Source of the DNA: Podarcis melisellensis
Taxonomy: Eukaryota
Length of the DNA: 64,000 nucleotides
NCBI GenBank assembly: GCA_964234715.1
Contig: OZ174277.1
Reading direction: 5' to 3' (one strand)
Under the pieces are notes generated by a model. It ran no database searches and was not told where the DNA came from. It worked only from the letters and a program-made list of their open reading frames with translations. A program made the position numbers and the translations under genes. This document shows, one piece after another, positions 3,450 through 55,500 of this stretch (positions within the stretch are counted from its first letter, which is position 1; every line of letters begins with the position of its first letter).

Positions 3450-4356
3450 TAAGGGGGGAATATCATTGTACTTGTGGAACTCATTGCTAGTGGGACTAAC
3501 CCATTAGTTGAATCCAGCCCAGCATGTTGGGATCCAGCCAACTAAGGCCCTATTTATATATACAGTTTATATTGTACATTTAGTAAGAAAGCTGCTTTTA
3601 GACTTCACATTGCCGGACATCCTCCCCCAAAGAACGTCCTTTAATATAGAAACTTTTTGTATCGGGGCAACAGTTTCAGCCTAGCATGGTATCTTTCTTC
3701 CGGGAGTTTGTTTTCCCAGCAGACTGAAGTGTTGAAGTAAAAATAAAAAAAATAAAAAATCACTTTATTATGCTGCAAGTATAAAAATAGACAATGGGAA
3801 CAATATAAGAAGAGTGAGCAATGATTAGAAATAAAAATTTCAAATTCTTCCATCATTTGCCCTCTTTTGCAGTATTATACCACCATGATACTGGTGCTTT
3901 GGCTGCCAAAATGAGCAATCTTAAGCAATGAAAAGTTTAAGGAAAACACGAGTATTAAATAAGGTTATAAATTCAAAATTGCACATTATATTAGGCAAAA
4001 TTTTGACTTAGCTGGAAATGGGAAATGGTGGAAGTAAGAGTAAAAGGGATGAAAGTGAGAGTAAAAGAGGATATTGCAAGATCCTTTGTATGTTACCAAT
4101 CCATTTTCAGTTTATGTCAGCCACTACAGATTGTTGGTAGTTAAGTGTGTCGATGTGACGATGTGCCTACGTCAATTCCAAGTGCTTTAGCCAGGGTTAT
4201 GGAATGTCAGCTCACATCTTTGTAGGCATCTTAAAACCATCTCACTGATTTTAAATGGATATAACTGATGCTCACCTATTCATTTCTGTTGGGCTGTCAT
4301 ACTTTGAGCAGGAGACCCATTGAATAAAATGTGACTTAAGGTAATCATCTAAAAAA

Positions 4357-4739
4357 AGGGTAAAGGTATAGGACCCCTGGATGGTTAAGTTCAGTTGAAT
4401 TCAACTGTGGGGTGCAGTGCACATCTCCACTTTCAGGCCAAGGGAGCCAGCGTTTGTCCACAGACAGCTATTCTGGGTTATGTGGCTTGCAGGACTAAAC
4501 TGCTTCTGACACACAGAACACCGTGAAAAGAGCCAGAGTGCATGGAAATGCTGTTTATCTTCCTGCCGTTTCAGTACCTATTTATCTACGCATGCTGGTA
4601 TGCTTTCGAACTGCTAGGTTGGCAGGAACTGGGACAAAGCAACAGGAGCTCACCCCACCTCATGGATTTGAACTGCCGACCTTATGATTGGCAAGCCCAA
4701 GAGGCTCGGTGGTTTAGACCACATTGCCACCCACATCCC
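4357..4739 (-). mobile_element. Sauria SINE
   Basis: Reverse-complement match to the 3086-3449 copy; AAAGGTA tail at the left end. Confidence 0.9.
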
Positions 4740-6888: not shown

Positions 6889-8371
6889 CTGGATCCAGAC
6901 CATACAATGAACATAAAAAAAGTAATAGGTAACCAAAAATAGTATATTTTACTTTAACATACGCTTCCTATTTCAGTTGTAACTTATTGCCAACGGTATG
7001 TCTGCTGTCCATACCTTGGCAAAAGAAGTAGTGTTCTGACTAATGTCTCTACTTTGGCACATCAGAACTACAAACACTGGCAAATATAGCATCTTGGGTT
7101 TCAGATATAAAATTCAGTCCGCAGAAACACAACACAGAGGTTCATCTGTCTCAGGAAACTGAGATAGCAGCCAAACTGACCATGCAACTCAAAACCCATT
7201 GACAACCTCAGCCTTGGACGCTTTATGCCATTTCTGAAAAGAAAAATTAAATGTGTACCTCCTTGCAGTCTGCTCTTGATTTTACAGTGAGTTTGTTGTT
7301 CAGAATTGTGAATTAATGTGTTCTATTTAATTAAATGCATCCAGCTGCAATGTAATTTCCCATAGGTTATATAACCTCATCCGGAACAGAAAGTCTTCTA
7401 CACTCCATACAATTACAATGAAAAAATAACTAAATAACTAACTAAATAAAGCTGTTTATATATTGGCAAGAATGAATGATATCAACAGAGCACTTCAGTT
7501 ACACAGAGTATTGATAATAATTTAATTCTTCCCCCATTGTGCTGTACAACCATATACTGTGGAAGTTAATATTATAATGGGCAAACTGGAGTAATTATCA
7601 TCATTCTAATATTCCTATTTAAATGCATGAAAAACTGATTAGCTGAAGGAGACCCTATTGCATCTGCCTAATACTTATGCTAATGCAAAGTCCATATTAT
7701 ACTAAAGGTTAGAGTTTACAGAAATAGTGTCCACCAAACATATTTTTTAAAGTACAACTATTATTTCATTTGCAGATATTTAATCAATATAATACATGTG
7801 AAAGACCATGCATTGTATGTATTAGAGTCCATTTAGAGATAATAGTGTCAATATTTGTGACAATTCTTTGTTATAATTCTCAATGATTAAATGTCCATTT
7901 TGTCTGAAAAGTTTACCTGGTGAGGCTTAGCTTGTCAGGACATTGTGCATTTGTATTAACACCCTATTGAAATGGAAAAGGTAGTGTTTCAGCCCTCTAT
8001 AAATGGGAACATGCAGACTTGCTAAAACCCAATTGCCTTTCCCTTCCTAATCTGATCAAGACAACACTTATCACTATTGAGAGCCCTGAAGTGTGTGGCT
8101 TTACACAGTAACTCAGAGCAGGGCTTTCAGTGTGTCTGCCCCTGTTCTGCTGAATAGCATTGCTGTTGAGACATGACAGGTGCCCACTATCTATCTGCAC
8201 TTTCTGGAAACTGCCAGCAGACCTTCCCTGCTGGATGAATGGATTTCTGCCATGGGGCATCTTTTTTTAAGATGCTTTTGACTGCTTTTTGTTATTTTAC
8301 AGTACATCACCTTGAGATAGCCGTGCAACAGGTGATTAATAAATAAACAATCATGGTTAGTACCATAATGA

Positions 8372-8685
8372 AGAGATGCGGGTGGCACTGTACTCAAAAC
8401 TACTGAGTCTCTTGGGCTTGTCAATCAGAAAGTTGGTGGTTCAAATCCACGCAATGGGGTGAGCTCCGGTTGCTCTCTCCCAGCTTCTGCCAACCTAGCA
8501 GTTCAAAAGCACACCAGTTCAAGTAAATAAATAGGTACCACTACAGTGGGAAGGTAAACAGCATTTCCATGCACTCTGGCACTCATCATGGACCTCCATG
8601 TGCCAGAAGCGGAGATGAGCACCACACCTCTTAGTCGCCTTTGACTGGACTTAACTGTCCTGGGGTCCTTTACCTTTTTACCTTT
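8372..8685 (+). mobile_element. Sauria SINE with an internal deletion
   Basis: Sauria head and body, ACCTTT tail; 10-bp TSD GTACCATAAT (8360-8369, 8686-8695). Confidence 0.9.
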
Positions 8686-13959: not shown

Positions 13960-14087
13960 NNNNNNNNNNNNNNNNNNNNNNNNNNNNNNNNNNNNNNNNN
14001 NNNNNNNNNNNNNNNNNNNNNNNNNNNNNNNNNNNNNNNNNNNNNNNNNNNNNNNNNNNNNNNNNNNNNNNNNNNNNNNNNNNNNNN
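13960..14087. other. Assembly gap (128 N)
   Basis: Run of N. Confidence 1.
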
Positions 14088-17900: not shown

Positions 17901-18676
17901 TGTGCACAGTCACATTTTTTTCAAATATTAATTCTGTGGACAAAATCTAGCACAGAGTTATATGAATTTGATTTTGATGAGACTTCAAGTCCACATAATT
18001 ATGCAATGGATTGTGGCCGGAGACTTTAATTAAATTACCAAGTGCCTTCTGCTCTGCCAAATTATGATAGATGAGCATCCGTAATATTTTGAATATTAGT
18101 TAACTTACAGTGATGCATACTTAATTATATCAGGTTCCCCCCTCTCAAACTGTAGCAGTTAAAAAAGGTATAGAGAGCAGCATGTTTTCAGACTTGACAT
18201 AAAACCTTTCACCATAAAACCAGGAGCTCTGATTTCATGCTACTTTAAAGTAACTTTGAAGTAATGAAAAAGCTATTTTCCAGCAATTGCTTCAAGGGCT
18301 CCTGTAATAATGTTTTTCACAGAGGACCCATATTTTTATTAAACAAGATAGGAGGGAGCATTTTCAAAGTTTTATTGGCATTTCTCTCCCTCTTTTCCTC
18401 TCTCTCTCACTTTATTTGTTAGCACACATTTTAAGCAGTTACTAATTTCTTATTGAATATTCTATTTCATTGTTTTAGTAATTTAGCTGATTTCAAGGTC
18501 CATATAACAAGCACTTAAATTAGGATGATGCTTCTGTAGGTTGAGCATGTAATCCACAAATCACATGAATACTGCAATGAGCCTCTTGCATATGTAAATC
18601 GAGATTTTGTGGGATTGCAACCACATGGGGAAATAAGAATGTAAGACAGAAAGATTGAGAGACTGAGTCACATTTA

Positions 18677-18917
18677 CAGTGGTACCTTGGGTTAAGTACT
18701 TAATTCGTTCCGGAGGTCCGTTCTTAACCTGAAACTGTTCTTAACCTGAAGCACCACTTTAGCTAATGGGGCCTCCTGCTGCTGCCGCGCCACTGGAACA
18801 CGATTTCTGTTCTCATCCTGAAGCAAAGTTCTTAACCAGAGGTAATATTCTGAGTTAGCAGAGTCTGTAACCTGAAGCATATGTAACCTGAAACATCTGT
18901 AACCCAAGGTACCACTG
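18677..18917. mobile_element. Tc1/mariner MITE, ~240-bp family
   Basis: TIRs CAGTGGTACCTTGGGTTA / TAACCCAAGGTACCACTG, TA TSD; opposite orientation to the copies at 25703 and 26438. Confidence 0.92.
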
Positions 18918-24774: not shown

Positions 24775-25965
24775 CACTCCTTCCTCCTGGACTGTGCCCA
24801 GAAAGTAGTGTTGAGGGATCAGTGGTCAGATCCCTGGACTCTCACTTGTGGGGTGCCTCCGGGCTTCATCCTCTCCTCCATGCTTTTTAACATCTATATG
24901 AAGCCGCTGGGAGAAATAATCAGGGGGTTTGGGCTGGGCATTCACCAGTATATGGATGATACTACCTCTCCTTTAAATCTGAACTAGTGAAGGCAGTGAA
25001 GGTCCTATGTGAGTGTCTGGAGGCTGTTAGAAGATGGATGGTGGCTAACAGATTGAGGTTGAATCTTGACAAGACAGAAGTACTGTTTCTGGGGGAGGGC
25101 TGGTGTGGAGGACTCCCTGATCCTGAATGGGGTAACTGTGCCCCTGAAGGACCAGGTGTGCAGCCTGAGAGTCATTTTGGACTCACAGCTGTCCATGGAG
25201 GTACAGGCCAATTCTGTGTCCAGGGCAGCTGTTTACCCTGCCCTGAGACCCTACTTGCCTACAGACTGTCTCACCAGAGTGCTGCATGCTCTGGTTATCT
25301 CCCACTTGGACTACTGCAATGCGCTCTACATGGGGCTACCTTTGAAGGTGACCCGGAAACTACAACTAATCCAGAATGCAGCAGCTAGACAGGGAGTGGC
25401 CACCGGGACCATATAACTCCGGTCCTAAAGGATCTTCATTGGCTCCCAGTGCATTTCTGAGCACAATTCAAGGTGTTGGCGCTGACCTTTAAAGCACTAA
25501 ACAGCCTCAGCCCAGTACATCTGAAGGAGAGCCTCCTCCCCCATTGTTCAGCCGGGATACTGAGGTCCTCCTTCAAGGGTCTTCTGCTGGTTCCCTCACT
25601 GCGAGAAGTGAGATTACAGGGAACCAGGCAGAGGGCCTTCTCAGTAGTGGCGCCCTCCCTGTGGAACACTCTCCCTTCAGATGTCTAGGAAATAAACAAC
25701 TACAGTGGTACCTCGGGTTACAGATGCTTCAGGTTACAGACTCCGCTAACCCAGAAATAGTACCTCGGGTTAAGAAATTTACTTCAGGATGAGAACAGAA
25801 ATCGTGCAGCGGCAGCGGGAGGCCCCATTAGCTAAAGTGGCACCTCAAGTTAAGAACAGTTTCAGGTTAAGAAAGGACCTCCAGAATGAATTAAATTCTT
25901 AACCTGAGGTACCACTGTGTCTGACTTTTAGAAGACATCTGAAGGAAGCCCTGTATTGGGAAGTT
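24775..25965 (+). mobile_element. L2 LINE fragment (RT domain to C-terminus), frameshifted, interrupted by a mariner MITE
   Basis: 'GVPPG.ILS.MLFNIYMKPL..HQYMDDT', 'RLRLN.DKTE', 'LDYCNALY.GLP..KLQLIQNAAAR', 'RAFSVVAPSLWN' across several frames. Confidence 0.92.
25703..25917. mobile_element. Tc1/mariner MITE nested in L2
   Basis: TIRs CAGTGGTACCTCGGGTTA / TAACCTGAGGTACCACTG; left TA, right TG (mutated); L2 resumes afterwards. Confidence 0.9.
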
Positions 25966-26117
25966 GGTGCAGTGCAAACACACTAGTGGAGACAATCCAA
26001 TGTTCCCTCTGATATGTTTGCATTAAGCCTCCCAGTAAGCAGTAGTGATATGACCAGCCGTAAGTCAGGTGAGCTCTGCTACCCCACCACACTGTCCACT
26101 ACAGCTTTCAGTAACAA

Positions 26118-26162
26118 AATCATAGAATTGTAGAGTAGAAGGGACCCCAAGGGTCCTTCTAA
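26118..26162 (-). mobile_element. Very short CR1 3' terminus
   Basis: AATCATAGAATTGTAGAGTAGAAGGGACCCCAAGGGTC resembles the reverse complement of a CR1 3' end with an ATTCTATG unit. Confidence 0.6.
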
Positions 26163-26307
26163 AGGAAATAAATATGCAAGAGAAAGTCCATCCCTGGTGA
26201 CTTTTTTTTTACAATTACTCCCCCCTCCCCTTGCGGAGATACTAGGTCTAGAAGCAGTTCATACAAGTAGATATTTTCATATTCTTGCTTGCTTACCAGT
26301 TTATATT

Positions 26308-27053
26308 TGTGTTGAAGCAAAGTGAAACGTTCCAGAAGGCCAGCAAGCACCATCTTGGTAGTCAAGATAATCCAGAAAAATAATTGGTAGTTGTGAGAAT
26401 GAGCTAATATATGTTTATGCTTCCTTTCTTTGATAAACAGTGGTATCTCGGGTTACATATGCTTCAGGTTACAGACTCCGCTAACCCAGAAATAGTACCT
26501 CGGGTTAAGAACTTTGCTTCAGGATGAGAACAGAAATCGTGCTCCTGCGGCGCGGCAGCAGCAGGAGGCCCCATTAGCTAAAGTGGTGCTTCATGTTAAG
26601 AGCAGTTTCAGGTTAAGAACAGACCTCCAGAACAAATTAAGTTCTTAACCCGAGGTACCACTGTATGCTAATTGGCTTGCATTGATGCTGTGCTTATATG
26701 TGGACCTAGATATGCTGGGCTGTAGATCCAGAGAGGTGAGAAACTTTGGATAGCTGCCATCTCTGGCCTCTCTGGCCAGGTATGATAGGAGGTTCTGGAC
26801 AAACTAACGTATGCTGCTTTGTGCTTATAACCTGTATAAATGTTTGCTTGGGGGCGGACATGTGATGGCGACCTCTCACTGTTGCAGTGTCCGTCTGGCG
26901 ACTGTAATAGCAGTGATGCCTGGCAGGCTGATTTACCTTACTCTTTCTGATAAAAAACCTCTAGAATGATCACTCTGTTTTTGACAACCTTCTTTGGTAT
27001 GCCTACACCAAACCGCTCACCTGATCCCGCCTTTGCGCTGGTGAATCATGACA
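26308..27053 (+). mobile_element. Probable solo LTR (~520 bp without its nested MITE)
   Basis: TGTGTTGA...TCATGACA termini, 5-bp TSD ATATT (26303-26307, 27054-27058), TATA-like TATAAAA near 26835, GATAAAA near 26949, CpGs retained. Confidence 0.6.
26438..26663. mobile_element. Tc1/mariner MITE nested in the putative LTR
   Basis: TIRs CAGTGGTATCTCGGGTTA / TAACCCGAGGTACCACTG; near-identical to 25703-25917. Confidence 0.9.
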
Positions 27054-29336: not shown

Positions 29337-29890
29337 CAGTGGTACCTTGGTTTAAGAACAGCTTAGTGGGTGGCTCTGTGGTCTAAACCACTGAGCCTAG
29401 GGCTTGCCGATTGGAAGGTCGGCGGTTCGAATCCCCGTGATGGGATGAGCTCCTATTGCTCAGTCCCAGCTCCTGCCAACCTAGCAGTTCAAAAGCATGT
29501 CAAAATGCAAGAAGATAAATAGGTACCCCTCCGGTGGGAAAGTAAACAACGTTTCTGTGTGCTGCTCTGGATTTGCCAAAAGAGGCTTGGTCATGCTGGC
29601 CACATGACCCGGAAAAACTGTCTGTGGACAAACACAGAGACACTGAAAAACATAGGAATACAGTACACAGAAAGGTAGTGAGTACAGTGGTACCTTGGTT
29701 TACAAACTTAATCCGTTCTGGAAGTCCATTCTTAAACTAAAGCATTCTTAAAAATAGCAGCAGGGGACTCAATTTACAAATGGAACACACTCAGCAGGAA
29801 GCGGAACATGTTCTGCTTCCAAGGCAAAGTTCACAAACTGAAACACCTCCTTCCAGGTTTGCAGCATTCTTAATCCAAGTTGTTCATAAA
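29337..29890. mobile_element. Tc1/mariner MITE split by a SINE insertion and an inversion (pieces 29337-29366 and 29685-29890)
   Basis: Two TA-CAGTGGTACCTTGGTTTA termini now in direct orientation; the pieces join into one MITE once the inversion is undone. Confidence 0.85.
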
Positions 29891-29992
29891 GAAAAGGTAA
29901 AGGTGAAGGGCCTCTGACAGTTAAGTCCAGTCACGAACGACTCTGGGGTTGTGGCGCCCATCTCGCTTTACTGGCCGAGAGAGCTGACGTTT
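29367..29992. mobile_element. Sauria SINE broken by an inversion: 5' part 29367-29633 (+), 3' part 29891-29992 (-)
   Basis: The 5' part ends ..TGTGGACAAAC; the reverse complement of the right piece continues AAACGTCAGCTCTCTCGGCCAGTAAAGCGAGATG..ACCTTTACCTTT. Confidence 0.88.
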
Positions 29993-34930: not shown

Positions 34931-36997
34931 CCATCCTTGTCATAGAGAAAATCGGAAAATGGGGGAAATAAGCAGAGGGCTCCTATTTCATGCTGGCAGT
35001 TTAGATGGTATCACTTCTTTGCAAGTATGCTATGATTCTATGTTTGCTAAGGTTGCATACTTTGCACATGAAGCAGGACCAGAGAAGAAGATCAAAGCTG
35101 ACATGGGAGTTCATAAAAGGGCAAGTGCTCCCTCAGTTATAGGGGACCATGACCATGAATTTCGCAATGCAAACAATTGCTACAAAATACCTTACAAGTC
35201 TTTTGTGGCAAAGCCCTTGGCTTATTTGTTTTCTTGAGCTTTTCAGTCTAAATTTGACTTCCGTTTTGAGCTAACTCTTTTACTATGGATGTGCTGTTTT
35301 GGTTCTATTAAAGATGGGAAGCTCATGATAATTAATTTTAGCTGAAAAATATTCACATGCACAGAAAGTACTCTGTAACAGTATGGACACATTTTCTGTG
35401 TTATAGGTAGAAACCGGAGAATATTAATTATATGCTAATATAGTAACCGAAGTTCATGCTTTGAAGAGATGTTGTCATTCAAGGGCATTAAGCATTTCTG
35501 AAACAGCTCATTTTTGCAGTCTGAATAATACATTCTTTACGGATCATTAGGCATTGTGCTAAATGATTTATGGTTTCATACATAATAGCTGGATTCTGAT
35601 GACTAAAAAACAAACAAACCCTCAAAAGTCAATTGAAGCTGTCCTAGTGCACAGCAGTTATATAAGAACATATTGTATAAATTTATACCGTAAATGTCTA
35701 CATTGTTCACTCTGAAAACTAGAGGTCAGTTCCTTTGAGTCTTTTTTTTACTTAGGTTTCAATACCAAAGCATGAGCAGCATATGAAACATAACACATGC
35801 ATGTGTGCATTATTATTCTGATTAGTCCTAAAACACACACACATGGGTCTGATTGCTGCTCATGTATGCTTTTCAGGACAGATATGGAAAATAAAATACA
35901 TGGCTATGATTCACACTGGATGTGGTGCCTGTCTATATTTTCATGCCTAAGCATTCACACATAAGGTAAAAAAAATCAAAAGAAAAAGTCACATAGGAAC
36001 TGGCCATAAACCTTTCCAGAAAAGTGTGTGTTGTATGGCATACTGTCATATAACTTATTCCTGCTCAGCAGCATAAATAGTAAATTGTTAGGACCAGTGC
36101 TGAAAAAGCTCTGCTTATTTTACTCATCAACCTCATATGTGTAGGCCAGAGCTTAACTGATGGCCTGATACAAAGGTTAAAACGCGGAGGGGAGGAAAGG
36201 ATTAGGTGTCAGTGGTTTCCTTGGGTATCTTGAATCTAGGCTTTGAAAGCCATCACCAACACTTTAAATGGAACCTGGAAACAATCTGAAGCCAATGATA
36301 GTTTCTTCAAATTCAGTGAAATATGCTCTCCACAGCCAGTACTTGCTAACAACAGGGTCTCTGCATTTTGTATCAGCTGAACCTTCCAGAAATTCACCAG
36401 AGGCACCCCTACACGGAGTGCAGATACAGAATTTATTTTCTTTATTTAACAAAGTCAACTTTTTTCTGATTTCCCAGAGGAATCAAAGGTGGCTAACAGA
36501 TCAGATAATAACAGTATTTAAAAAAATCCACTCCCCAATTAAACTCAAATAACAAAAAATGAACATGAAAACGTTTTTCACAAAATTTAGGATTACAGAA
36601 TAGCTGTCAAAACACCACACTAAGCTAGAAGAAGATCACTCAGCCAAAGGTTTTCACCAGCTGCTTGAAGCAATTTAATGATTGGGCATGACACTCCCTT
36701 TACTCCGCAGGCAGTCCACAAGGTGGGTGTCAGAACAGAAAAGAGCAGCAGGAAAGTTACTGATGCATGTTTAATGGCAGCTCAATCATACAAGTGAAAA
36801 ACGACTGTGCTTAAGTCTTCCCTTTTTGTGGTAAGAGAAATATAAATTTAAAAACAATACAGACAAATCTATTGCAATGGTATTGCAATTAACCAGGTGT
36901 AAAAGAAGGACAGGTTCCGATGTCTGTAAAAATTAAAGAAGAAGTGACTAAACATCATATGTTACATTTATTAGAAAGGGGGTACTTCTGTCTAAAT

Positions 36998-38881
36998 CAT
37001 GGGTAGGCAAACTAAGGCCCGGGGGCTGGATCCAGCCCAACCGCCTTCTAAATCCAGCCCGTGGACGGTCTGGGAATCAGCGTGATTTACATGAGTAGAA
37101 TGTGTCCTTTTATTTAAAATGCATCTCTGGGGTATTTGTGGGGCATAGGAATTCATTCTTTTTTTCTTCTTTCCAAAATATAGTCCAGCCCCCCCACAAA
37201 ATTTGGAGCAGAATTTGGAGCAAATGATTCAGGAGGAAACACAGCCCAGAATAACTAAGGAGAAAGTACAAGAATACTTGGCTAGTTTAGATGTATTCAA
37301 CTCTCCAGGGCCAGATGTACTGCATCCAAGAGTATTAAAAGAACTGGCAGATGTGATCTCAGAACCACTGGCAGTCATCTTTGAGAATTCCTGGAGAACA
37401 GGCGAAGTCCCGGCAGACTGGAGGAGGGCAAATGTTGTCCCTATTTTCAAAAAGGGGAAAAGAGAGGACCCAAATAATTACCGCCAGTCAGTCTGACATC
37501 AATACCAAGGAAGATTCTGGAGCAGATCATTAAGCAAACAGTCTGTGAGCACCTAGAAAGGAATGCTGTGATCACCAATAGTCAGCATGGATTTCTGAAA
37601 AATAAGTCATGTCAGACTAACCTGATCTCATTTTTTGACAGAATTACAACCCTGGTAGATGAAGGGAACGCAGTGGATGTAGCCTACCTTGATTTCAGCA
37701 AGGCATTTGACAAGGTGCCCCATGATATTCTTGTAAAGAAGCTGGTAAAATGCGGTCTTGACTATGCTACCACTCAGTGGATTTGTAACTGGCTGACTGA
37801 CCGAACCCAAAGGGTTCCTCTTCAATGGTTCCTCTTCATCCTGGAGAAGAGTGACTAGTGGGGTGCCACAGGGTTCTGTCTTGGGCCAGGTCTTATTCAA
37901 CATCTTTATCAATGACTTGGATGATGGACTCAAGGGCATCCTGATCAAATTTGCAGATGACACCAAACTGGGAGGGGTGGCTAACACCCCAGAGGACAGG
38001 ATCACACTTCAAAACGACCTTGACAGATTAGAGAACTGGGCCAAAACAAACAAGATAATTTTAACAGGGAGAAATGTAAAGTATTGCACTTGGGCAAAAA
38101 AAATGAGAGGCACAAATACAAGATGGGTGACACCTGGCTTGAGAGCAGTACATGTGAAAAGGCTCTAGGAGTCTTGGATGACCACAAACTTGACATAAGC
38201 CAACAGTGTGACGCGGCAGCTAAAAAAGCCAATGCAATTCTGGGCTGCATCAATAGGAGTATAGTATCTAGATCAAGGGAAATAATAGTGCCACTGTATT
38301 CTGCTCTGGTCAGACCTCACCTGGAGTACTGTGTCCAGTTCTGGGCACCACAGTTCAAGAAGGACACTGACAAACTGGAACGTGTCCAGAGGATGGCAAC
38401 CAAAATGGTCAAAGGCCTGGAAACGATGCCTTATGAGGAACGGCTAAGGGAGCTGGGCATGTTTAGCCTGGAGAAGAGGAGGTTAAGGGGTGATATGATA
38501 GCCATGTTCAAATATACAAAAGGATGTCACATAGATGAAGGAGAAAGGTTGTTTTCTGCTGCTCCAGAGAAGCGGACACGGAGCAATGGATCCAAACCAC
38601 AAGAAAGAAGATTCCACCTAAACATTAAGAAGAACTGCCTGACAGTAAGAGCTGTTTAACAGTGGAATTTGCTGCCAAGGAGTGTGGTGGAGTCTCCTTC
38701 TTTGGAGGTCTTTAAGCAGGGGCTTGACAACCATATGTCAGGAGTGCTCTGATGGTGTTTCCTGCTTGGCAGGGGGTTGGACTCGATGGCCCTTGTGGTC
38801 TCTTCCAACTCTATGATTCTATGATTCAAAGACTGAGGGACAGTGGACCGGCCCCCTGCTGAAAAAGTTTGCTGACCCCTG
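36998..38881 (+). mobile_element. hAT MITE (same family as 530-778) split by a CR1 insertion
   Basis: Left half 36998-37200, right half 38828-38881; exact 8-bp TSD GTCTAAAT (36990-36997, 38882-38889). Confidence 0.92.
37201..38827 (+). mobile_element. 5'-truncated CR1 LINE; ORF2 reverse transcriptase pseudogene with frameshifts
   Basis: 'SPGPD.LHPRVLKEL', 'YLDFSKAFDKVPH', '[18 protein letters not shown]', 'IKFADDTKL', 'LYSALVRPHLEYCVQFWAP'; (ATTCTATG)n 3' tail. Confidence 0.97.
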
Positions 38882-39107
38882 GTCTAAATGATGGCTTTTC
38901 AGTGGATGGGATTTCAGCATCAACACATTACCCTATGAAGGGAGCAGAAACTGCAGCTTCCCTATCCAAAATATATGTGAGCAAGATCCCAGTCCTTTCT
39001 CAGTCACCACTCATGGGTATTTTGAAGAGAAAAGTCAAATTTGTGTCTTTGTTCTTTAAAGCACCAAGAGAGCTCAGAAACTGTTTAATAATAGCAGCAT
39101 ATATATA

Positions 39108-39180: not shown

Positions 39181-40377
39181 GGGAATACTGAGAAACAACA
39201 ACAAAACTTCCATGTTCTGCTGAGAAACAAATTAAACTAAATGGAAACTAAATGGAACAACATCAAAAGAGTAGGACAGGATTACACAGAATGTATCAGC
39301 AGTGACCCATGCCCAGCTGCCCTTGAGTGGCACCTGTATATTTGCTGCCCATAGCTGAGTCACTTCTAAGGATGGAAGAAAGCTTAGCATTGTTATTACT
39401 ACATTTGTATCCTGCCTACCAAGGAACTTAGGGTGGCATCCCATTTTGTCTTCGCAACAACCCTGTAAGGGAGGTTGGCTTGGTTTCTCCAAACCAGCTC
39501 AACCCTTCAGTGTTCACTGCCAATTACTGCTGCAAAGAGTGCTTGAACAAAAACTCATGCCTTAAAAAAAAAAGGTTGCCCACTGAACTGGAAGTGCAGC
39601 ATTATTAGAAACAAACAAATTAGCAGGGAAAAAGGTCAAATCACTACCCAGTAAACCTTATAAGATTTTTTGCTGTCATTAAGTCTCAGCTGAGAGCTTT
39701 ATAACTTGGGAATATAATTACTGTCAGGAAGCATGCCAAAGAAGCAATCAAGGGGAAGCAGAGAGCAGGAGGCCATGTCTAAAGCCAGTAATATATTCTT
39801 CCGTTATGGCCAAAATTAGGTTGGTATTTAGTTCTGCCACAAATGGTAGACATTAAGGGTGATAGTAGATCACAGCATGACAGACACATTATTGTGTGTT
39901 TATTTTGTGTGCATTTATTAAAAGGATGGTTCTTAATCTTCTAACCACAGCAAAGAAAATGAAAACAAAAGTAAACTATGCATTATGCTTAATGCACTGT
40001 GTGTAGCAGTGTGTCTTGTTTTTCTTAGTGCTGTGGTGGGATGGGAGATTGTTATCTGGATAAAAGTGCACAGGGAGGCAAGGTTTATCTTATACCTTTC
40101 CTAGCTACACTGGGAAGGGCGAATTTCAGGGTGGTGGACCTTGTGGCTGGAAAAAGGAAGGGATAAATGTCCATTCTTGCATTGTTTGACCTGATATCAA
40201 TACACACACCAACTGGAATTAAGAAAAGCAAGGGATGCAGCTTTGTGCTACGCATTAAACACAATGTGCAGATTCTGAACTAAGATAAATCATCAGATGT
40301 TGAAGTGAGGACAAGAGTATTTAATTTTCAGCTCATGTTACTACCACAGAAAGTCTTGATTTTCCAAAGTATGCTTC

Positions 40378-42695
40378 TGTTGTTGTTTAGTCGTTGAGTC
40401 GTGTCTGACTCTTCATGACCCCATGGACCAGAGCACGTCAGGCACTCCTGTCTTCCACTGCCTCCCGCAGTTTGGTCAAACTCATGTTTGTAGCTTCGTC
40501 CCCTTCTCCTTGTGCCCTCAATCTTTCCCAACACCAGGGTCTTTTCCAGGGAATCTTCTCTTCTCATGAGGTGGCCAAAGTATTGGAGCCTCAGCTTCAG
40601 GATCTGTCCTTCAGGACAGTATTGGAGCCTCAGCTTCAGGATCTGTCCTTCCAGTGAGCACTCAGGACTGATCTCCTTCAGAATGGATAGGTTTGATCTT
40701 GGAGTCTATGGGTCTCTCAAGAGTATCCTCCAGCACCATAATTCAAAAGCATCAATTCTTTGGCGATCAACCTTCTTTATGGTCCAGCTCTCACTTCCAT
40801 ACATTACTACTGGGAAAACCATAGCTTTAACTATACAGACCTTTGTCAGCAAGGTGATGTCTCTGCTTTTTAAGATGCTGTCTAGGTTTGTCATTGCTTT
40901 TCTCCCAAGAAGCAGGCATCTTTTAATTTCATGACTGCTGTCACCATCTGCAGTGATCATGGAGCCCAAGAAAGTAAAATCTCTCACTGCCTCCATTTCT
41001 TCCCCTTCTATTTGCCAGGAGATGATGGGCCCAGTGGCCATGATCTTCGTTTTCTGATGTTGAGCTTCAGACCATATTTTGTGCTCTCCTCTATCACCCT
41101 CATTAAAAGGTTCTTTAATTCCTCCTCACTTTCTGCCATCAAGGTTGTGTCATCTGCATAGCTGAGGTTGTTGATTTTTCTTCCGGCAATTTTAATTCCA
41201 GCTTGGGATTCATCCAGCCCAGCCTTTCGCATGATGAATTCTGCATATAAGTTAAATAAGCAGGGAGACAAAATACAGCCTTGTCGTACTCCTTTCCCAA
41301 TTTTGAACCAATCAGTTGTTCCATATCCAGTTCTAACTATAGCTTCTTGTCCCACATAGAGATTTCTCAGGAGACAGATGAGGTGATCAGGCACTCCCAT
41401 TTCTTTAAGAACTTGCCATAGTTTGCCGTGGTCGACACAGTCAAAGGCTTTTGCATAGTCGATGAAGCAGAAGTAGATTTTTTTTGGAACTCTCTAGCTT
41501 TCTCCATAATCCAGCGCATGTTTGCAATTTGGTCTCTGGTTCCTCTGCCCTTTTGAAATCCAGCTTGCACTTCTGAGAGTTTTCAGTCCGTATACTGCTT
41601 AAGCCTGCCTTGTAGAATTTTAAACATAACCTTGCTAGTGTGTGAAATAAGCGCAATTGTGCGGTAGTTGGAGCATTCTTTGGCACTGTCCTTTGGGATT
41701 GGGATGTAGACTGATCTTCTCCAATCCTCTGGCCACTGCTGAGTTTTCCAAACTTGCTGGCATATTGAGTGTAGCACCTTAACAGCACCATCTTTTAAAA
41801 TTTTAAATAGTTCAGCTGGAACATCATCACTTCCACTAGCCTTGTTATTTGCAGTGCTTTCTAAGGCCCACTTGACTTCACTCTCCAGGATGTCTGGCTC
41901 AAGGTCAGCAACCACACTGCCTGGGGTGTACAAGGCATCTATATCTTTCTGGTATAATTCCTCTGTGTATTCTTGCCACCTTGATGTCTTCTGCTTCTGT
42001 TAGGTCCTTACCACTTTTGTCCTTTATTATGGTAATTGTACGAAATGTTCCTTTCATATCTCCAATTTTCTTGAACAGATCTGTTTTTTTCCATTCTATT
42101 GTTTTCCTCTATTTCATTTAAGAAGGCCCTCTTGTCTCTCCTTGCTATTTTTCAGAAATCTGCATTCAATTTCCTGTATCTTTCACTATCTCCCTCACAT
42201 TTTGCTTGCCTTTTCTCCCCCGCTATTTGTAAGGCCTCGTTGGACAGCCACTTTGCTTTCTTGCATTTCCTTTTCATTGGGATGGTTTTCGTTGCTGCCT
42301 CCTGTATAATGGTACCAGCCTCCATCCATGGTTCTTCAGGCACTCTGTCTACCAAATCTAAATCCTTAAACCTGTTCCTCACTTCCACTGTGCATTCATA
42401 AGGGATTTGATTTAGATTGTATCTTACTGGCCCAGTGATTTTTCCTACTTTCTTCAGCTTAAGCTTGAATTTTGCTATAAGAAGCTGATGATCTGAGCCA
42501 CAGTCATCTCCAGGTCTTGTTTTTGCTGACTGTATTGAGCTTCTCCATCTTTGGCTGCAGAGAATATAATCAATCTGATTTTGATGCTGCCCATTTAGTG
42601 ATGTCCATGTGTAGAGTCTCCTCTTGTGTTGTTGGAAAAGAGTGTTTGTGATGATCAGCTTGTTCTCTTGACAGAGCTCTATTAGCTCTATTAGC
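40378..42695 (-). mobile_element. BovB (RTE) LINE, 5'-truncated, ~2.3 kb, multiple frameshifts
   Basis: 'EPDILESEVKWAL', 'GKGVRQGCILSPCLFNLYAE', 'NNLSYADDTTLMAESEEEL', 'FPVVMYGSESWTIKK..RIDAFELWCWR', 'DSLEKTLVLGKIEG'; (CAA)n tail. Confidence 0.96.
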
Positions 42696-42897
42696 TCCCA
42701 TTTTCATCATTAAAAGTTTTTATCAGCAATTTGTCGCCTTGTTTGCGTTTTTGTGTCCCAAAAACTTAGTTTATAATCTAATAGTTCTCCAAAAGGTTTT
42801 TACTTTCTCAATCTCACTTATCTTCCTAATTCTATCTAATTTAGTGGTGCTCAATTATTTCTGATTTAGCAACCTACTTAACATTCAACCAAATTAC

Positions 42898-42956: not shown

Positions 42957-45431
42957 TTCCTGGCTGTGTCATAGTTGTGCCATTTGTGCACATGCATAGC
43001 TAGAGGTCCTCTGTCTATCCCAGAAAATTGTATGCCAAGGACTATCTGATCTCCTGCCACCGTTTAAAAAGTATAGGATTAAGATTTATTTTCTGTGCTC
43101 AGTGTTCTTATAGTCGTTCTAAAGTGTTTATTCCATTACATAAACCAACAGAATATATCTTTCAATTGTTTCTGAGACAACTGATAGTTATACATAATAG
43201 GTTTATGATTTTTTTGTTTGTTTGCACATAATACAATGCTTTCCAGGTAGGCCAATAAATGTGATCTGAAATTATGAAAACATAATTTCAGGGTATTGCA
43301 ACAAGAGTTTGATTGGTATAAATTAGTGCAGGTAAATACTAGTGCCTTGAGTGAAAACCCAATCAACTCTTAAGTGTTATTGCTTAGCAAGTCAATGTAT
43401 CATTGCTAACCTACCACACACTGAGTGTATCCATGGGACATTAAGCAAGCCAAGTAAAACAAGGCAATCTAAAATGTATCATTCAGTAGCTCAATATCAT
43501 TGCTGTCCATGTTGGTTCTATGCAGTGTAGCATGAAGGCACAAGTTCTGAGGGCTGTGCATATTATTTCCTTGGATTATGCTGTCCATTTCATTGCTAAA
43601 CATTAAGACCTACTTGGTAAGGGCAAAAAACTGAAGCTAAAAGCTCATTATAAATCCTTTTATATTAAATTTACCGGTCTACAGAGTACAGTGATAAGCT
43701 TTCTGACCTCAATCCCTCTGGATGTGACTTCACAAATGAATGCAACTAATGTGCTTTTTGCTTTATGGAATGTGATTCAGGCTAATCCCACAAAAAATGT
43801 GATGGGGTGAAGGTGAGGTCATGGACTACAGGAAATAAAGACGTGGTTATAGAATACATGTGTGTGCAAAAATCAGAGCAGTAACTTAATATTAGCCTGA
43901 GAACAAAATACTGTAAGAGCAATCTAACTGGATAAAAAGTAAAAATGGATAAACAAAGTCAAGTGGAATTCAACAAAATTGTGAACATATCTAATAGTGA
44001 TGATGATGATTGTTTCACTATATGGAGAGAAATAACTAATAATGAGAACACGTAGAACCACTGTGTACTAAAGATGGAGGGCAAATCAAAGGTGGTTCAT
44101 CTGCCATAGCAAATGCTCTGCCGGCATCCAAGCCCTGTTGTCAGCAGGGCAGAAGGCAGGAGCACTCTTGCAATCTTACAGGGTAGTCCTCCCCCCACAT
44201 CATATGTGAAGTAGTTACCTCCCATTGTTTCAAATAAGAGTGAAATAAATGGGCTTGAACTGTGTCAGGATGGGCATAATTCAATATCCAGTTTGGCATG
44301 TGTGTGCGTATCAGACAACTGTAAAAGCATCCAATCCTTTGCAGTCAAATTTTATTTGGGTCTCTCTAAGCACATCCCAAACCTGCCCCACTTTCAGCCC
44401 TACCAAAGGGCCATGGAAGTTGTTGTGGCAGTAGGAAGAGGGAACCCAACACTGAATCTCCATCACCAAGGCTAGAGCTCTCCTTCCCATATACAGAGCC
44501 AGATAAACCTCCTATGATCAGAGCAGAAGCTTTTGTAGCCAACAAGTACCTGGCAAGTGGCCCATGAGAGTCCTGTGGGTAGTTGGACAGGCCAGATCCA
44601 GCTAATGGCTAGCCTTACTTTAGGTCTAGGAATATCAGCCACACGTGGTGTAACATAGTCTCTTGTTGATAATAACTGATTCCTTTTCACATTGGTTCAG
44701 GAAAGAAAATTGTGTCATATCTTACTTGTTTAAAAACAAATGTTATTTGTAGGCATGTAACATTAATTCCAACCAGCATTTAAGTTCAGTTAAGCAGAGT
44801 TCTGCTGCTTATCACTTCCCCTTTCCTGCATCCTTTGTTGTAATTCATATAACAAGCTAAATGCATAAATACACTGAACAATATATGTCAGAATGATTAA
44901 TAAATAATATGCCAACACAAAACAACGTGGCTAGGATTCAATGAACCCTGCAGTGTGGCATTTATAATATACTCATATTATAATTAAATAGATAGTACTG
45001 TATTTCTAGACAATGCAAAATCAAACAGGCATTCAAAAACTGGCAATATATAGGCAATCAGACTCTGCCATATGAAATCCAAGGAAACCTATCATTGACC
45101 AGCACCAGACTACTATACTCAGTTGTTTTTAATTAAACATCAGCAGTGATGTGACAAATAAACTGCATGAAAAAAACTAAATGTTAAGAGCTTTTCTTTC
45201 CTATAACTAACATGATTCATGGAATTGAACATCCTTTCTGGTCAGAAGGTCTTAGAAGACAAAATCTGAATGATATCTGAAGAACTAAAAAGGCAAACTC
45301 AAGAAAGATAAAATCTGTAAAGCTAAGTAGCAGTACAGGATTCAGTAAGCAATAACTAGCTAGGCTCCCCAGATAACACTAATTTATAGAGAGAAGCAGA
45401 TCAGTATAATCACTCCATGAAGAGCACTTAC

Positions 45432-45483
45432 CACAGTAATCAAACACTCTCACAGCAGCAATGAATGAGAAACTTCCACTTAC
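45432..45483 (-). other. 52-nt exon candidate whose 5' end reconstitutes a donor (recursive-splice/RS-exon-like)
   Basis: CTTTTCTTTTTCTTTTTCAG|GTAAGT...CTGTG|GTAAGT: pure pyrimidine tract, CAG acceptor and two GTAAGT donors. Confidence 0.6.
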
Positions 45484-45751
45484 CTGAAAAAGAAAAAGAA
45501 AAGCCCGTTTTAAACTAGCTCCTCAGAAGCACTATTTCAAAAAGAGGAAAAGGTACTTAGCTTATTTTAGCTTTGCATGATATTTTCATAACAGCAGTAT
45601 GAGATACCATTCTAAGCTACATTTATTTTTCATCTAAAGAGGTTTAAAAATGGTGTGCATATGATACAACAAGTAAAACAAAGCACAGTCAGTCATAATG
45701 CTATCTGAACTGCTACAATTGCTCCACAACTGGTTTAATATTTCTTCAGCT

Positions 45752-46196: not shown

Positions 46197-46399
46197 ACTC
46201 CATTGCCCAATTCCACTATCCTTATAGAAACAACAGTCTTATTCATTCATTCACTATCTGGATTAAATAAACACACGAGGCGAGAGTGGGTATAAGGATG
46301 CTAGCTGTGCCCCTTACCCTGCTGTTTTGCACAGTTTCAAGGGTGACTGTCTCCTGTACTTGTGGTGGCTTCTGCATGATGCAGAACACTGGAAATTTA

Positions 46400-47053
46400 G
46401 GGTTCTATATCACACGGGGCCCTTCAGGAGTACAGGAGGGTTCTCCACCGCACACTTTCACTTTTGAATTCATAGAAAGTGTTGCGGATGCAGGTGGAAG
46501 TATCAGACTCGTGTCCACTCTCCTCCTCTCACATGTTTGGTTAACCAAGGTAGAGAATGCTTGAATAAGGCTAATGACACACAGGAAGGAGTTAAGGAAC
46601 AGAACGTTGGAACCGATAGTTAAGGAGACTACTTCTCAAACAATAATGACTAGTTCAAGTCAAAAAGCTCAACCCCCTTTTAGCACAGGAAACATCAGGT
46701 TTTACTTTAAAAAATAGGGCATCATAAGGTGAAACAGCATTTTCCCCCAGAGGGTTGAAAGTGGTACAGTAGAAGCAGCATTGTCTGTAGTGAGCACACC
46801 AACATCCAAGCATTGTCTCAGGTCAGATGGTTTTGCAGCTGTTTAAAAATTCTGCATACCCTGTTTGAACAGAGGCCACAGCAGGACAAACAGGCTACAG
46901 CAGGACATGTTAGCGTGCAATTATGGAAAACTGTAGCTCTCTCAAAACACTTTCAACTCTCGTAAAAATGACTCTCTAGTAGCCACAATAGGAATCTTGG
47001 TGCGGTGGAGAACCCTCCTGTACTCCTGAAGGGCCCTGTGTGATATAGAACCC
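46400..47053. mobile_element. 654-bp segment bounded by 54-bp inverted repeats (candidate PIF/Harbinger-like MITE or fold-back)
   Basis: 46400-46453 versus the reverse complement of 47000-47053: 53/54 identical; flanked by TTA and TAA. Confidence 0.6.
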
Positions 47054-48490
47054 TAATTTTGAATATCTGTGGGTAGGTGCACTGAATGTATCAGAGGGAG
47101 CTGTCCACAGAGTTCTTATTACTAGGAGTGTTGAAATAGGTTCAAAGTTCTGAAACCCTTTCAGGCAGGGCCACAAGACAGAAACACTTTGCTACTTCAG
47201 ACTCCTGGCTTATGATCTGTGGTAAGAGAAACCTGAAGTATAAGTCTAATAAAGTGACACAGGTGTATATTTTGAGCACATAAAATGGCATGGGGAAAAT
47301 ATTGTAATGAGGAAGGCCAGGGAAGAGAGATATTTAGCATTATAATTACCATTCTCTGTTCTGTTCAAAATATTCTTGGGACTAAAGTCCACAGGAGAAC
47401 TGAGGCATCCAAGTGAAAATACAGATAAGGCAGTATAATTGATCTTTTTGACTACTTATATTCTCACGCTGCATTGTGGCGCAGCTGTACTTCACAGTCT
47501 GGGTATGACTTTCTGACTAAAATGGGTAGAAACACACAGCATCATATAGCTATGTCTTTAACATATGAAGAAGAAGGGAAGGGATGTCTTCACGCTAAAG
47601 GTGGACACAGTTGTTGTAGCTCTTGCCCTCTTGTTCATTACTTCATCACCATAGTGAATTACGCCTATGTGAACGTGAAGGGTTTGGGCTTTTTTTATCC
47701 TTCTGAAATCCTAATCTGAAAAGCTGTTCTAACTAAATTTCATGCCTAACCCTGCAATGCCTGCAGAGTAGATTACATATGAACATTACAAAGGCAGAAC
47801 ATTTCTCATATTTGGGTTTTCTTAAAAAAAATAAATCAGAGCTGATTTGTGTTAGTAACGAAGTGGTATCACTGCTACTGTGGTGAGGCCCACTGTTCCC
47901 CCCTAAAATAATATAATGAACAAAATTCCAGCTAATATTATAGAAAACAAAAATCCAACCTAGTGCATGTGCATACGCCCTCTGAGTTAAGGGGAATGTA
48001 AGTTGAGTAGTTAATGTGTATAGCAACCAGTCATTATGTGCATTCACCAGGCCTCATAGAGAATGCACACATAAAGAGGGCATTGTGCACATTTTCTGCT
48101 CAAAATATACAATCTCCCAACAGGTCTTGGGGAATGTGCATATATTGGCTAATTTTTCTACATTCTCCCTAAGATTTTGTACATTGTTCCTAAGCTTAAT
48201 GGCAGCATGGTATGTGTGTGTGATTTCTATCAGAATTGTGGGAAGGGAGGGAAAATTGAAACATACACATTCCCCAAGGCCTGTTGCAGATTATGTACAT
48301 ATACTGATAAATGTCCACAATTCTTTCTTCATGGATTATGTGCTCATTCTTCATGGGTCCTGGTGAATATGCACAATGGCTGATTGTTCTACACATTAAC
48401 CACACAAGTTGCATTCTCCTTAACATACCACACACATGCATGCACTTGGGATTTTTGTTTATATCTATATCTATCAATATAAAATAATGT

Positions 48491-50910: not shown

Positions 50911-52225
50911 CGACCCGAACTCATAAAAGCACAATGGAATAAAGGCAGAACTGTTGTAGGCTGTAGAACACAAGTCTCTTTCTGTTCATTGTCCTGGGGG
51001 AGTCCTAAACCACTGAAGGAAGCAATTCCCTTCAAGCAGTATTAGCATTTGTTTATGAAACATCTGAGAAGATCCCTGAATTACTGCACAATGCTGATGA
51101 AGGGAGGGAAACCCAATGAGCAGCAGTACACCAGAATGTTCATATACAAGAAAGCTATTCTACAAGCAAGAATTAATTTTTTGGTTTCTTAATTACAGCA
51201 CAATACTATATCTACTTAGAAGCAAGTCCTATTTACTTCAGTGGGGCTTACTCCCAAGTAAGTGAGGTTAGGACTAGAGCCTTAGCCATCCATTTTTGCT
51301 CAAGGGTATCAAAGATTATATATTTTCATCACTCAGACTTGCATTCTAAGGAAAGATTTGTGGGCTTTCTCTTTTAATCTTAAAACCATTCAATATATGG
51401 CAAGTTCAGTTTTTCGTATTCCCATCCCAACCATTTTTAAAACAGGTTGCACCCTAAGCAGTTTTAAAACATCCCATTTCTTTACAAAGATTACCAAATC
51501 TATTTCTCTCCTGAAACTGACACAATGCCTGGCTGCCTGTCAAATATTCCTGCCTTCCTAAGCTGTTTGGGCTTTTCTCTCAGCTAAAATAACAAGAAAC
51601 GGAGGGACAGAGTTTCTGCAAGGCTAACAGAAGGTCTGACATAGGTGTGCATGCCTTGCTATTAACTCTTTTGAAACTATGAACCTTAGTACAGCAGGTT
51701 AAGGGGACACAGTCTCTCCTAATAAAAAGGCTTAAATAAATCCACACTAGGGATTAGTTTGCTTTATGGACATAGCAGAGAAAATGTCACACACTATCAA
51801 ATGCTCTGTTCTGTAAAGCCAACTAACATTAATTAAACTGCTGGCCCACAAACTCAGGTTTTGCTTTGAAACTTGGCAATTGTAACAAAATTATCTACCT
51901 TATGGTGTCCATTCTTTTAAATATCCAATATGAGATGAATCTACACACTTGACAACATCACCATATTCATGGGTTGCAAAGTTGGAACATTTCAGTGAAG
52001 GAGTTCACACACATGGGTTTGCTGCACAGTACTTGCATATATTAGCTTCCCTTCTTCCCATTGCCATTTATGCAATGCATCTTATGCATAATGCACCAAA
52101 GCAAAGGTAGGAAGAATCACTTTCTGATCCTGACTTTACCCTGGACTTGGCTTTGTGAGGATGGAATGTGGAAGCAGGAAGCAGCAGGAGGTATTGATTA
52201 ATTAACCAGGATTAATTAGCAGGCA

Positions 52226-52580
52226 GGGACATGGGTGGCGCTGTGCTCTAAACCACAGAGCCTAGGGCTTGCCAATCAGAAGCTCGGCGGTTCAAATTCC
52301 CGTGATGGGGTGAGTTCCCGCTGTTCGGTTCCTGCTCCTGCCCACCTAGCAGTTCAAAAGCACGTCAAAGTACAAGTAGATAAATAGGTACCGTTCTGGC
52401 GGGAAGGTAAATGGCATTTCTGTGCACTGCTCTGGTTCGCCAGAAGCAGCTTAGTCATGCTGGCCACATGACCCGGAAGCTGTACGCTGGCTACCTCGGC
52501 CTATAGAGCGAGATGAGCGCTGCAACCCCAGAGTCGTTCACGACTGGACCTAATTGTCAGGGGTACCTTTACCTTCACTT
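52226..52580 (+). mobile_element. Sauria SINE, full length
   Basis: GGGACATGGGTGGCGCTGTG head, ACCTTT tail, 14-bp TSD TTAATTAGCAGGCA (52212-52225, 52581-52594). Confidence 0.95.
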
Positions 52581-55500
52581 TTAATTAGCAGGCAGCAGAA
52601 AACAGTGAATGCAGGAGGCAACTATTCAGTCTTTAATCCTGGTACCAAGACAAAAATATTATCAAAAGAACTTTCTGTTAAGGTCTATTTTTATAATAAA
52701 GAGCTTTCTTATTTACTGAAAATGTATACGAACATAAATCTCCATACACTTTCCCTTTCTCTCACTCACTGACCTTTACATTAAATTACCCTTAATAGTA
52801 AATTAAATTATTATTGTGTGGGGTGGCGGAAGATGTCTTTATCTTAACCTCCATGCCCCACTGCACTGGAATGGATTTAGAGGAATCTATCCTTCACTAA
52901 TAAATTATACTTATATTTAAAGGTAGATTCAGATCCAAAGTTGCTTGATTTTTACACTGCCAACTATGTAAAATATCTGCCTATCTCCATTTTAACATCC
53001 TTTTAGGCAGCAATCTTATGCACATTTACTAGGGAGTGTAACTTAATAAAATGGGATTCCATTTAGACATGTCTAGGACTGCACAGGGTTAGTTTCTTTA
53101 TTGGCATATGATCAGTTTGCATATTGGCTTTAGAGTTCCACTTATTCATTAAACATTTTTCCTCATAAAGTTCATTATGAAGCGCCCACACTTGTAACTT
53201 GTGTTCCCTGGCAGAATAGCATGCTTGTGTGTTTGTCAAAGAAGTGACTGTGAAAAGATTGCCAATGGGAGGGGTAAGGATTCACATATGCCAGCCTTTT
53301 TTCAACCAGATCTTTTGGAGTCTAACTCCCATCAGTCCAAGCAAACACATCTGTGATGCCTGGAGCTGATGAGAGTTGAACTCCAATATATCTGAATGTT
53401 ACCAGGTTGGAGACTATGATATTATAATGGGTACTTGTCTTCTGTAGTTCTTTCCTGCAACCACTGGAGAAAGGCAGGGATTCTCCCCTGGTGTGTTGGG
53501 ACTTGTTAGCAGATCCGGTTCCTCCCTCTTAGGGAGATGGTGGTCATGGCAAGAACAAATTCTGGTTGTCTTCCAAAACAAGAAGGGGCACTGTCACTTT
53601 ACTGAAAAGAAAAGAAAAATCAGCCTCTAATAAGAAAGGGAAACCAGAAAGATTGAAGCTAGGGAACTACTGGTAATCTATTCCCTTCCCCCAGGGAAAA
53701 GAGCTAGGGCTATAAGCAGCATTTTTATTCTCAGGATTTTCTGGTGAGAACAGTGGCGGCGGACACCAGAAGTTAGTTGTTTGCACCTCCCCAGCAGTCA
53801 GCAACCCATTTGTCCAACAGGTAGTCCTGGAAGTTAGTTGTGATCTAAAAGCACTGAGCAACTCAGAATCGATGTCCTGTTAAATGCTGATTGGTGCTGC
53901 CTGCAAACTCCTTTTTGGCCCACCCACAACTTCATCTGCACCACATGTGGGACAGGTAGGTGGTGGCTTGCCAAAATGCCCTGAAGGTTCAGAGGAAGTT
54001 TAGCTGGCTTAGTTAGATCTACAGCCTGATGTCTTCCCATTCCAGGCTTAGAGTGACCCAAGATAGAACTGGCAAGCATGTCTGGAGAAAAAGAAGGAAG
54101 GAAAAGGAGACAAGCAGCTGAAGAGGACAGATGAAATAGAAGATGAGTGTCTAACTTGTGATATTTCTTTAGAAATATTCCACTATTGTTTTTTTTTTTT
54201 TTGCAACCATAAAGACTAGACATTAGTTTTCCAAGAGGATTCTCTGACCAAAGGCTGGATGAATTGAAACTTTTGCAGAGAATGTGGGAAATAACGGACA
54301 GCATGACAATGTTTTTCTTGCTAAGTCCTTGATCAAAGCTCCCTTCAGTGTTCTCAAGGGTCCGAACGCCATATTTGCCTTAACTGGAATGGGAGATTAC
54401 AATCTCTTATTGATTTTTCAAGACTGTGAGCACTTCACAGAAAGGACTGCCTTTTAAATTTGCTTCCATGCTTTATTTTGGAGCACTTAATTGTGTAAAA
54501 CAGATACAGCAGATAGAGCCATATTTGTCAGTGGGATGTAAGACACACACAGTATCACTAAATTATGTCCACTGACCACTTTTCTTGGACTTTAAATGAA
54601 TCTAGACAGAGGAATTAAAAGTCCACCTTTAAGGAATAAATCACTGTGTGGATCATGCAAAACTCCAGAAAGAGCAACAAAAAACACTCATTTCAGGAGG
54701 CTTGCCTTAAGCAAAGTTTAAAAATTGGTAAAAATTCTACTCTCTAGCATTTAGACTAGGCAATAAATCCTACTGCTTACTTCTGAGTAAAATCACAAAG
54801 GATTGTGCAATTAACCATGAATCTAACTCTGATTAGAATCAGAACTGAAAGCTTTAATCTTGGCTGAATCATGCGATCAAATTTATATTTATATATTTCA
54901 TATGGGATACAGAAACAATATTATTCTTAACATGCAGTAATTTTCTGTGAAATATGTATAATTACTGCATAAATTTAGATAAGATGTCTTCTCAAAAGGA
55001 TTATTACCAGCAGTCATGCATAGTAACTAGCACCCCTGTAGCATAATAAAAGCCTGAACAAGTCAAACAATCATATCTTTTTTCATACCGTTCTGGGGTA
55101 TTTTTTTTTAGTTGGAAAGAAAGAATTAGTGATCTATAATGTCTGAGTCCTAGTTGATTTTTTTTTTTACTAATCATTATTGCTCTTCAAAGGAGATGAG
55201 GGATTATACAAATAGGGCAGCCTCAACATGGAAGTGTTCATATCACATTCTATGTATGTGGTGAACAGTGGGAATAGAGCAAATTTTCACTTTTCCATTC
55301 CTTAATTGTTCTGTGCACTTGCTCTGCCCTGTGTACTACTCCTCCTGGTTTCCAGTTAAATTAGGAAATTTATTGGAGTACAGCCTGGAACTAGAGAGTG
55401 GGCAGTTTACCACAATTTCTGGTGCCTTTGATTGCTTCCTCTGCTTTATGGGTGTGGGGGGCAGTCTTGATGCACTGAAGATTTTTGTGCAGCATTTTAC

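Follow-up and report, generated by a model that had tools for sequence, protein, structure and literature searches.

Recursive splice (RS) sites in long vertebrate genes are reportedly known from the work of Sibley in 2015. Sites of this kind that depend on exon definition have been described in CADM1/2, ANK3, ROBO2, NTM, OPCML, HS6ST3, PDE4D, NCAM1 and LSAMP (PMC5126111, PMC6224609, PMC8797253). Twenty RS sites were found in the mouse cortex, with RS exons of 42-348 nt (PMC8797253), and about 20 efficient sites are present per mammal, half of them with reads from the downstream donor. The published features of such sites are AGGTAAGT, 20 nt rich in pyrimidines and, in the mouse, introns longer than 51 kb; for RS introns with the saw-tooth pattern, medians close to 550 kb are given (PMC10156609). 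According to the published model, definition of the RS exon and its splicing to the upstream exon come first, and a rebuilt donor then competes with the exon's own (PMC6224609; bioRxiv 10.1101/2025.08.14.666599). The RS exon is normally removed tracelessly, and NMD clears just the rare cases of inclusion. Two neighbouring classes have also been described: annotated RS-exons, on which the exon junction complex acts as a repressor (Blazquez 2018; PMC6224609), and cryptic exons of an RS-like type (PMC8797253). Our literature search returned no report of a recursive splice site in a lizard.

Here we describe a site on the minus strand of lizard DNA that, judged from its sequence, is a good candidate for the exon-defined RS class and a likely addition to it. 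It lies in what we call the window, the whole stretch of 64,000 nucleotides that was analysed (Table 1; a slash in a motif marks the splice junction). A preliminary description of this DNA had drawn attention to an 18-nt pyrimidine tract and AG running into GTAAGT, and this arrangement was confirmed at 45503-45478. The site combines the YAG/GT fusion (typically AGGTAAGT), a strong tract and 3' splice site, a downstream donor at +52 nt and an exon that breaks the reading frame. The proposed match to the architecture of published vertebrate RS sites, YAG/GTAAG with a donor downstream, is thus borne out. The second donor had been called perfect. Its GTAAGT does begin at 45431, right after the exon-final GTG, but the perfection is confined to the intron side, GTG not being a consensus exon end. 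The sequence had further been called unique, and this holds for the window, the extent of our search, in which no further copy of the 45483 site turned up. AG-GTAAG occurs a single time on the window's minus strand, at this site.

Table 1. Features of the candidate recursive splice site, in window coordinates
Feature	Position	Strand	Basis
Polypyrimidine tract, 18 uninterrupted C/T	45486..45503	minus	read from sequence
Acceptor AG preceded by C (3' splice site)	45484..45485	minus	top minus-strand acceptor of the window
GTAAGT abutting the acceptor, the intron half of a donor that could be rebuilt	45478..45483	minus	sequence and matrix score
Candidate RS exon, 52 nt, 3n+1	45432..45483	minus	sequence and frame check
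Downstream donor GTG/GTAAGT, which would define the exon	45426..45434	minus	sequence and matrix score
Candidate branch points, weak: A at 45510, A at 45523	45507..45523	minus	inference

The candidate exon behaves in translation much as had been claimed. Its length of 52 nt is not a multiple of 3, and stops are met in the frames that begin at bases 2 and 3: the former opens with an immediate TAA and has a TGA further on, and the latter contains a single TGA. The frame from base 1 is open for 17 codons and reproduces the peptide that had been quoted for it. Inclusion of the exon would give a stop in two entry phases and a frameshift in the third, which is of relevance only if the exon joined from upstream is coding. 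About 30 nt ahead of the acceptor contain no AG, the closest upstream AG being at 45516, and no textbook branch point is present upstream of the 45484 acceptor. The 45483 site gave no Rfam match and no unusual RNA fold (z -0.78). The polypyrimidine tract is similar to a short (CTTTTT)n repeat, a type that can arise neutrally. A retroposon-like remnant, recognised by eye, stops about 250 nt upstream of the motif and excludes it.

In its shape, the lizard site resembles the exon-defined RS sites closely. Common to both are the pyrimidine tract, CAG/GTAAGT, a downstream donor less than 350 nt away, the size of the exon and a long exon-free setting. Among the closest in shape are mouse Lsamp RS2 (48 nt, with the identical downstream donor GTG/GTAAGT) and mouse Cadm2 RS1 (73 nt, with a stop in the exon). 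When the primers published for the Lsamp and Cadm2 RS exons were compared by eye with the lizard exon, no match was seen, and a comparison with the known mouse RS exons by length, donors and primers likewise yielded none. Unlike the catalogued sites, the lizard site is known from sequence alone and may fall between two separately annotated genes. Annotated RS-exons, as well as cryptic exons that are RS-like, also start with a donor motif and have a good downstream donor of their own, as the lizard exon does. However, these exons are included in mRNA, and those of the cryptic class usually have a weak rebuilt donor, whereas the rebuilt donor of the lizard site looks strong.

How often such a site might arise by chance was estimated in several ways. 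Splice scores were calculated with our own approximate weight matrices, which are neither MaxEntScan nor SpliceAI. On this scale, the 45483 site ranks first in the 64-kb window among minus-strand acceptors (17.6 bits) and among minus-strand donors (12.9 bits), and the 52-nt exon is the highest-scoring exon pair on both strands. Over 128 kb (both strands), the acceptor is first or second, depending on the scoring scheme; one at 54081 scores slightly above it when intron bases alone are counted. Of all AG-GTRAG sites in the window, the runner-up reaches no more than 3.8 as an acceptor, as against 17.6 at 45483. No equal site appeared in 400 simulated windows (200 from order-2 and 200 from order-5 Markov chains). 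Because Markov chains under-count long pyrimidine runs, we multiplied the rates observed in the window itself as a second estimate. Under strict definitions, this gave 3e-6 to 1.5e-4 sites per window, or about 0.1-4 in the 25,000 windows of a lizard-sized genome, and under loose definitions tens to hundreds of look-alikes per genome, all with thresholds that were set after the site had been seen. Since about 0.1-4 strict look-alikes stand against some 20 efficient RS sites per mammal, a clean site is likelier to be real than fortuitous. With due regard to the post hoc thresholds, the 45483 site appears more likely to be genuine than to be a product of chance.

The preliminary description had placed the window in a giant intron of a minus-strand gene. 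No host coding exon was detected in 64 kb (45 kb on one side of the site and 18 kb on the other), and a window of this kind would fit a giant intron. Apart from LINE reverse transcriptase, no Pfam match above the cut-off was obtained among 50 candidate exons and long frames, a search past which short or domain-free exons could slip. The G+C content of the window is 35-47%, and neither a convincing CpG island nor a partner exon was found in it. An excess of T over A (+0.012, 95% interval -0.006 to 0.030) leans toward the minus strand but is not significant and does not prove minus-strand transcription, and donor-like words show no enrichment on the minus strand of the window.

To place the window in the genome, we relied on anchor genes whose positions are assumed here. 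UTRN, NHSL1, AHI1 and HBS1L presumably lie 1.33, 3.25, 4.38 and 4.52 Mb past the window's end, and ARID1B presumably lies 3.49-3.55 Mb before its start, in an order that we take to be that of human 6q23-25 reversed. With human positions likewise assumed, the four anchor intervals scale at 2.55-3.14 human bases per lizard base; this is consistent and serves as a partial check on the anchors. By interpolation, the site would correspond to a position near hg19 148.3 Mb (147.5-149.1 Mb for scales of 2.0-3.15). If an exon-free stretch at least as long as the window is required, the SAMD5-SASH1 gap takes 71-98% of the weight in the interpolation model. By this interpolated synteny, the likeliest host is a transcript that crosses the SAMD5-SASH1 gap; we regard this only as reasonably probable, having lowered its weight because the coordinates are assumed and because a local rearrangement may have occurred. 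In human, SAMD5 and SASH1 lie with the genes around them on the plus strand, which would correspond to the lizard minus strand and so to the strand of the motif.

Other hosts were considered. PTPRK, LAMA2, NKAIN2 and PDE7B were dropped, as the AHI1, NHSL1, UTRN and ARID1B anchors put the window on the other side of HBS1L, and GRM1 and UST fitted the interpolation poorly. Synteny also argues against the example hosts offered in the preliminary description (CADM1/2, ANK3, ROBO2, NTM, OPCML, HS6ST3 and PDE4D), the window presumably being situated between UTRN and ARID1B. Further, the neighbours HBS1L, AHI1, NHSL1, UTRN and ARID1B, as unverified anchors, coincide with none of the 20 mouse RS loci; the lizard site would therefore not be an orthologue of a site in any of the genes named there.

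The region was also sought in the published catalogues of RS sites. The mouse cortex lists (84 candidates and the top 50 weaker ones) contain no chr10 entry near Samd5/Sash1 at the mouse position that we assume for these genes. When 342 human RS candidates were searched for 11 neighbouring gene names, the single match was STXBP5, which was rejected as a counterpart because its intron of 14 kb is too short. The absence of the region from the mouse and human lists counts against a conserved, efficient site here. Those screens retain AGGT sites within annotated genes only; an intergenic site would thus be missed. The mouse candidate chr10:+21,309,092 is probably within Hbs1l. It has a low count of 9 reads (PMC8797253 S1 Fig E).

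We propose, with somewhat better than even confidence, that the 45483 site serves exon-defined recursive splicing within a giant intron of the minus strand, and we model each splicing step on published precedents. In the initial step, the spliceosome would define the 52-nt cryptic exon by means of its strong acceptor and downstream donor, and the upstream exon would be joined to base 45483. A donor composed of the last three bases of the upstream exon and GTAAGT would thereby be rebuilt. In the subsequent step, this donor would usually outcompete the downstream one, and the 52 nt would depart with the next piece of the intron, leaving no trace in the mRNA. On the rare occasions when the downstream donor was used, the exon would be kept and the frame would be broken in every phase. 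Such transcripts would be cleared by NMD if the upstream exon is coding, so that NMD would act as a fail-safe rather than as the main route.

The relative strengths of the two donors are pertinent to this proposal. The GTG/GTAAGT 9-mer has a MaxEntScan score of 10.36 in a published table whose letters are slightly garbled by machine reading, and AAG, CAG and CAT before GTAAGT score 11.0, 10.86 and 8.31, respectively (PMC8797253). With an upstream exon ending in CAG or AAG, the rebuilt donor would hence reach 10.9-11.0, against a downstream donor of 10.36; the strength of the rebuilt donor hinges on that end. As the rebuilt donor would then be the stronger of the two, skipping would be expected to dominate, with some leak. 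In the mouse, exon-to-downstream-exon reads are obtained from RS exons whose downstream donor is strong, and a leak like that at those sites would be anticipated here.

Several other readings of the motif must be weighed. The exon could be included in some transcripts, as a 5' untranslated exon, a lncRNA exon or a regulated poison cassette, and simply happen to start with a donor motif; it would then be an "annotated RS-exon" whose skipping is restrained by the exon junction complex. SASH1 presumably has distant upstream first exons, and stops would be irrelevant in a non-coding exon. The downstream donor is strong (10.36), mouse RS exons with donors of that strength do give reads into the downstream exon, and in vertebrates, included exons that have a donor motif at their start and rely on the exon junction complex number in the hundreds (PMC6224609). 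However, mouse RS-like cryptic exons mostly have a weak rebuilt donor (PMC8797253), whereas the intron half here is the full consensus, and the window revealed neither a CpG island nor a partner exon for such a transcript. Taken together, these considerations leave an included exon rather unlikely. We also judge it unlikely that the motif is a pseudo-exon that arose by chance, in DNA that is untranscribed or evolves neutrally, and that stood out because many windows were scanned. In this lizard, the region may lie between genes, and the look-alikes expected per genome (tens to hundreds by loose definitions, 0.1-4 by strict ones) lend this idea some weight. Against it, all three signals together stand near the top of their scales, and the next AG-GTRAG acceptor falls far below.

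The remaining alternative, an ordinary small coding exon, had already been raised in the preliminary description. The exon could run from phase 0 to phase 1, or it could be a short last exon with a 34-codon frame to the stop and a poly(A) signal at 45133 or 44356. One frame is indeed open across the exon, for 34 codons in all, and poly(A) signals do lie downstream. Yet open frames of 17-34 codons are common by chance, poly(A) hexamers are frequent (58 AATAAA on the minus strand of the window), and no other coding exon was detected within the 45 kb and 18 kb at its sides. A coding exon is the least likely of the rivals and strikes us as very improbable; chance and an included exon, be it non-coding or poison, have to be taken more seriously.

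If the 45483 site is a recursive splice site between SAMD5 and SASH1, a fusion transcript known from human tumours becomes pertinent. In chordoma, SAMD5 exon 1 (147,830,523) is spliced in frame to SASH1 exon 2 (148,711,270) with copy number unchanged (PMC5352057), and the SAMD5-SASH1 fusion has also been found in ganglioneuroblastoma, grade I meningioma and a BCOR tumour (PMC7653769, PMC6489307, PMC13429291). We infer that an in-frame splice over 881 kb with no change in copy number is the pattern to be expected from read-through over a giant intron. The interpolated position of 148.3 Mb falls within this published splice (147.83-148.71 Mb), and the fusion and the lizard site probably share a genomic interval and a strand. 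The interpolation scale gives about 340 kb for the lizard counterpart of the human span. The fusion papers concern a human tumour rearrangement and leave recursive splicing unmentioned, and the tie to the lizard site is one of interpolated synteny alone. Our literature search found no link between SASH1 and recursive splicing, and a word search of two reviews found no passage on an isoform or a fusion of SASH1.

A more speculative proposal, which we advance as a doubtful but worthwhile possibility, is that SAMD5 exon 1 belongs, together with the body of SASH1, to one ancient giant gene. The site would be a ratchet for the stepwise removal of an intron of about 340 kb in the lizard and 881 kb in human, and the recurrent "fusion" would be a long form of SASH1 that is made normally and carries an additional SAM domain at its N-terminus. 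The RS screens would have overlooked a SAMD5-SASH1 site, since they look inside annotated genes only. About 10-20 efficient sites of the saw-tooth type are known per mammal, and the class would be broadened by an RS locus away from the brain adhesion genes. If the site does lie between SAMD5 and SASH1, it would offer a single base at which to ask whether the fusion reported in cancer is in truth a normal isoform, and it would reveal a gap in the reach of RS screens that are bound to annotation. Should it be a product of chance or a plain untranslated exon, it would be of little interest.

Other features of the window were also noted. An element of 668 nt at 46393-47060, about 900 nt upstream of the RS-like site, is bounded by 61-nt inverted repeats that are 97% complementary; it is a MITE-like insertion with no clear target-site duplication. 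The segment 47939-48583 comprises a long palindrome, imperfect and of about 530 nt, with an 85-nt hairpin next to it, and the two are probably remnants of non-autonomous DNA transposons. The 54081 acceptor, also on the minus strand, sits in a 181-codon open frame (53837-54379) that gave no Pfam or PDB match, and the donor that follows it after 158 nt is only weak. Two LINE copies, both broken but with reverse-transcriptase domains, occupy 36900-38900 (plus strand) and 40300-42720 (minus strand); by eye, they were judged to be CR1-like and RTE/BovB-like. Multi-copy short interspersed repeats are located at 348-778, 3082-3452, 4360-4739, 8370-8685, 18672-18891, 25702-26665, 29366-29979 and 52222-52584, and positions 13960-14087 are a run of 128 N.
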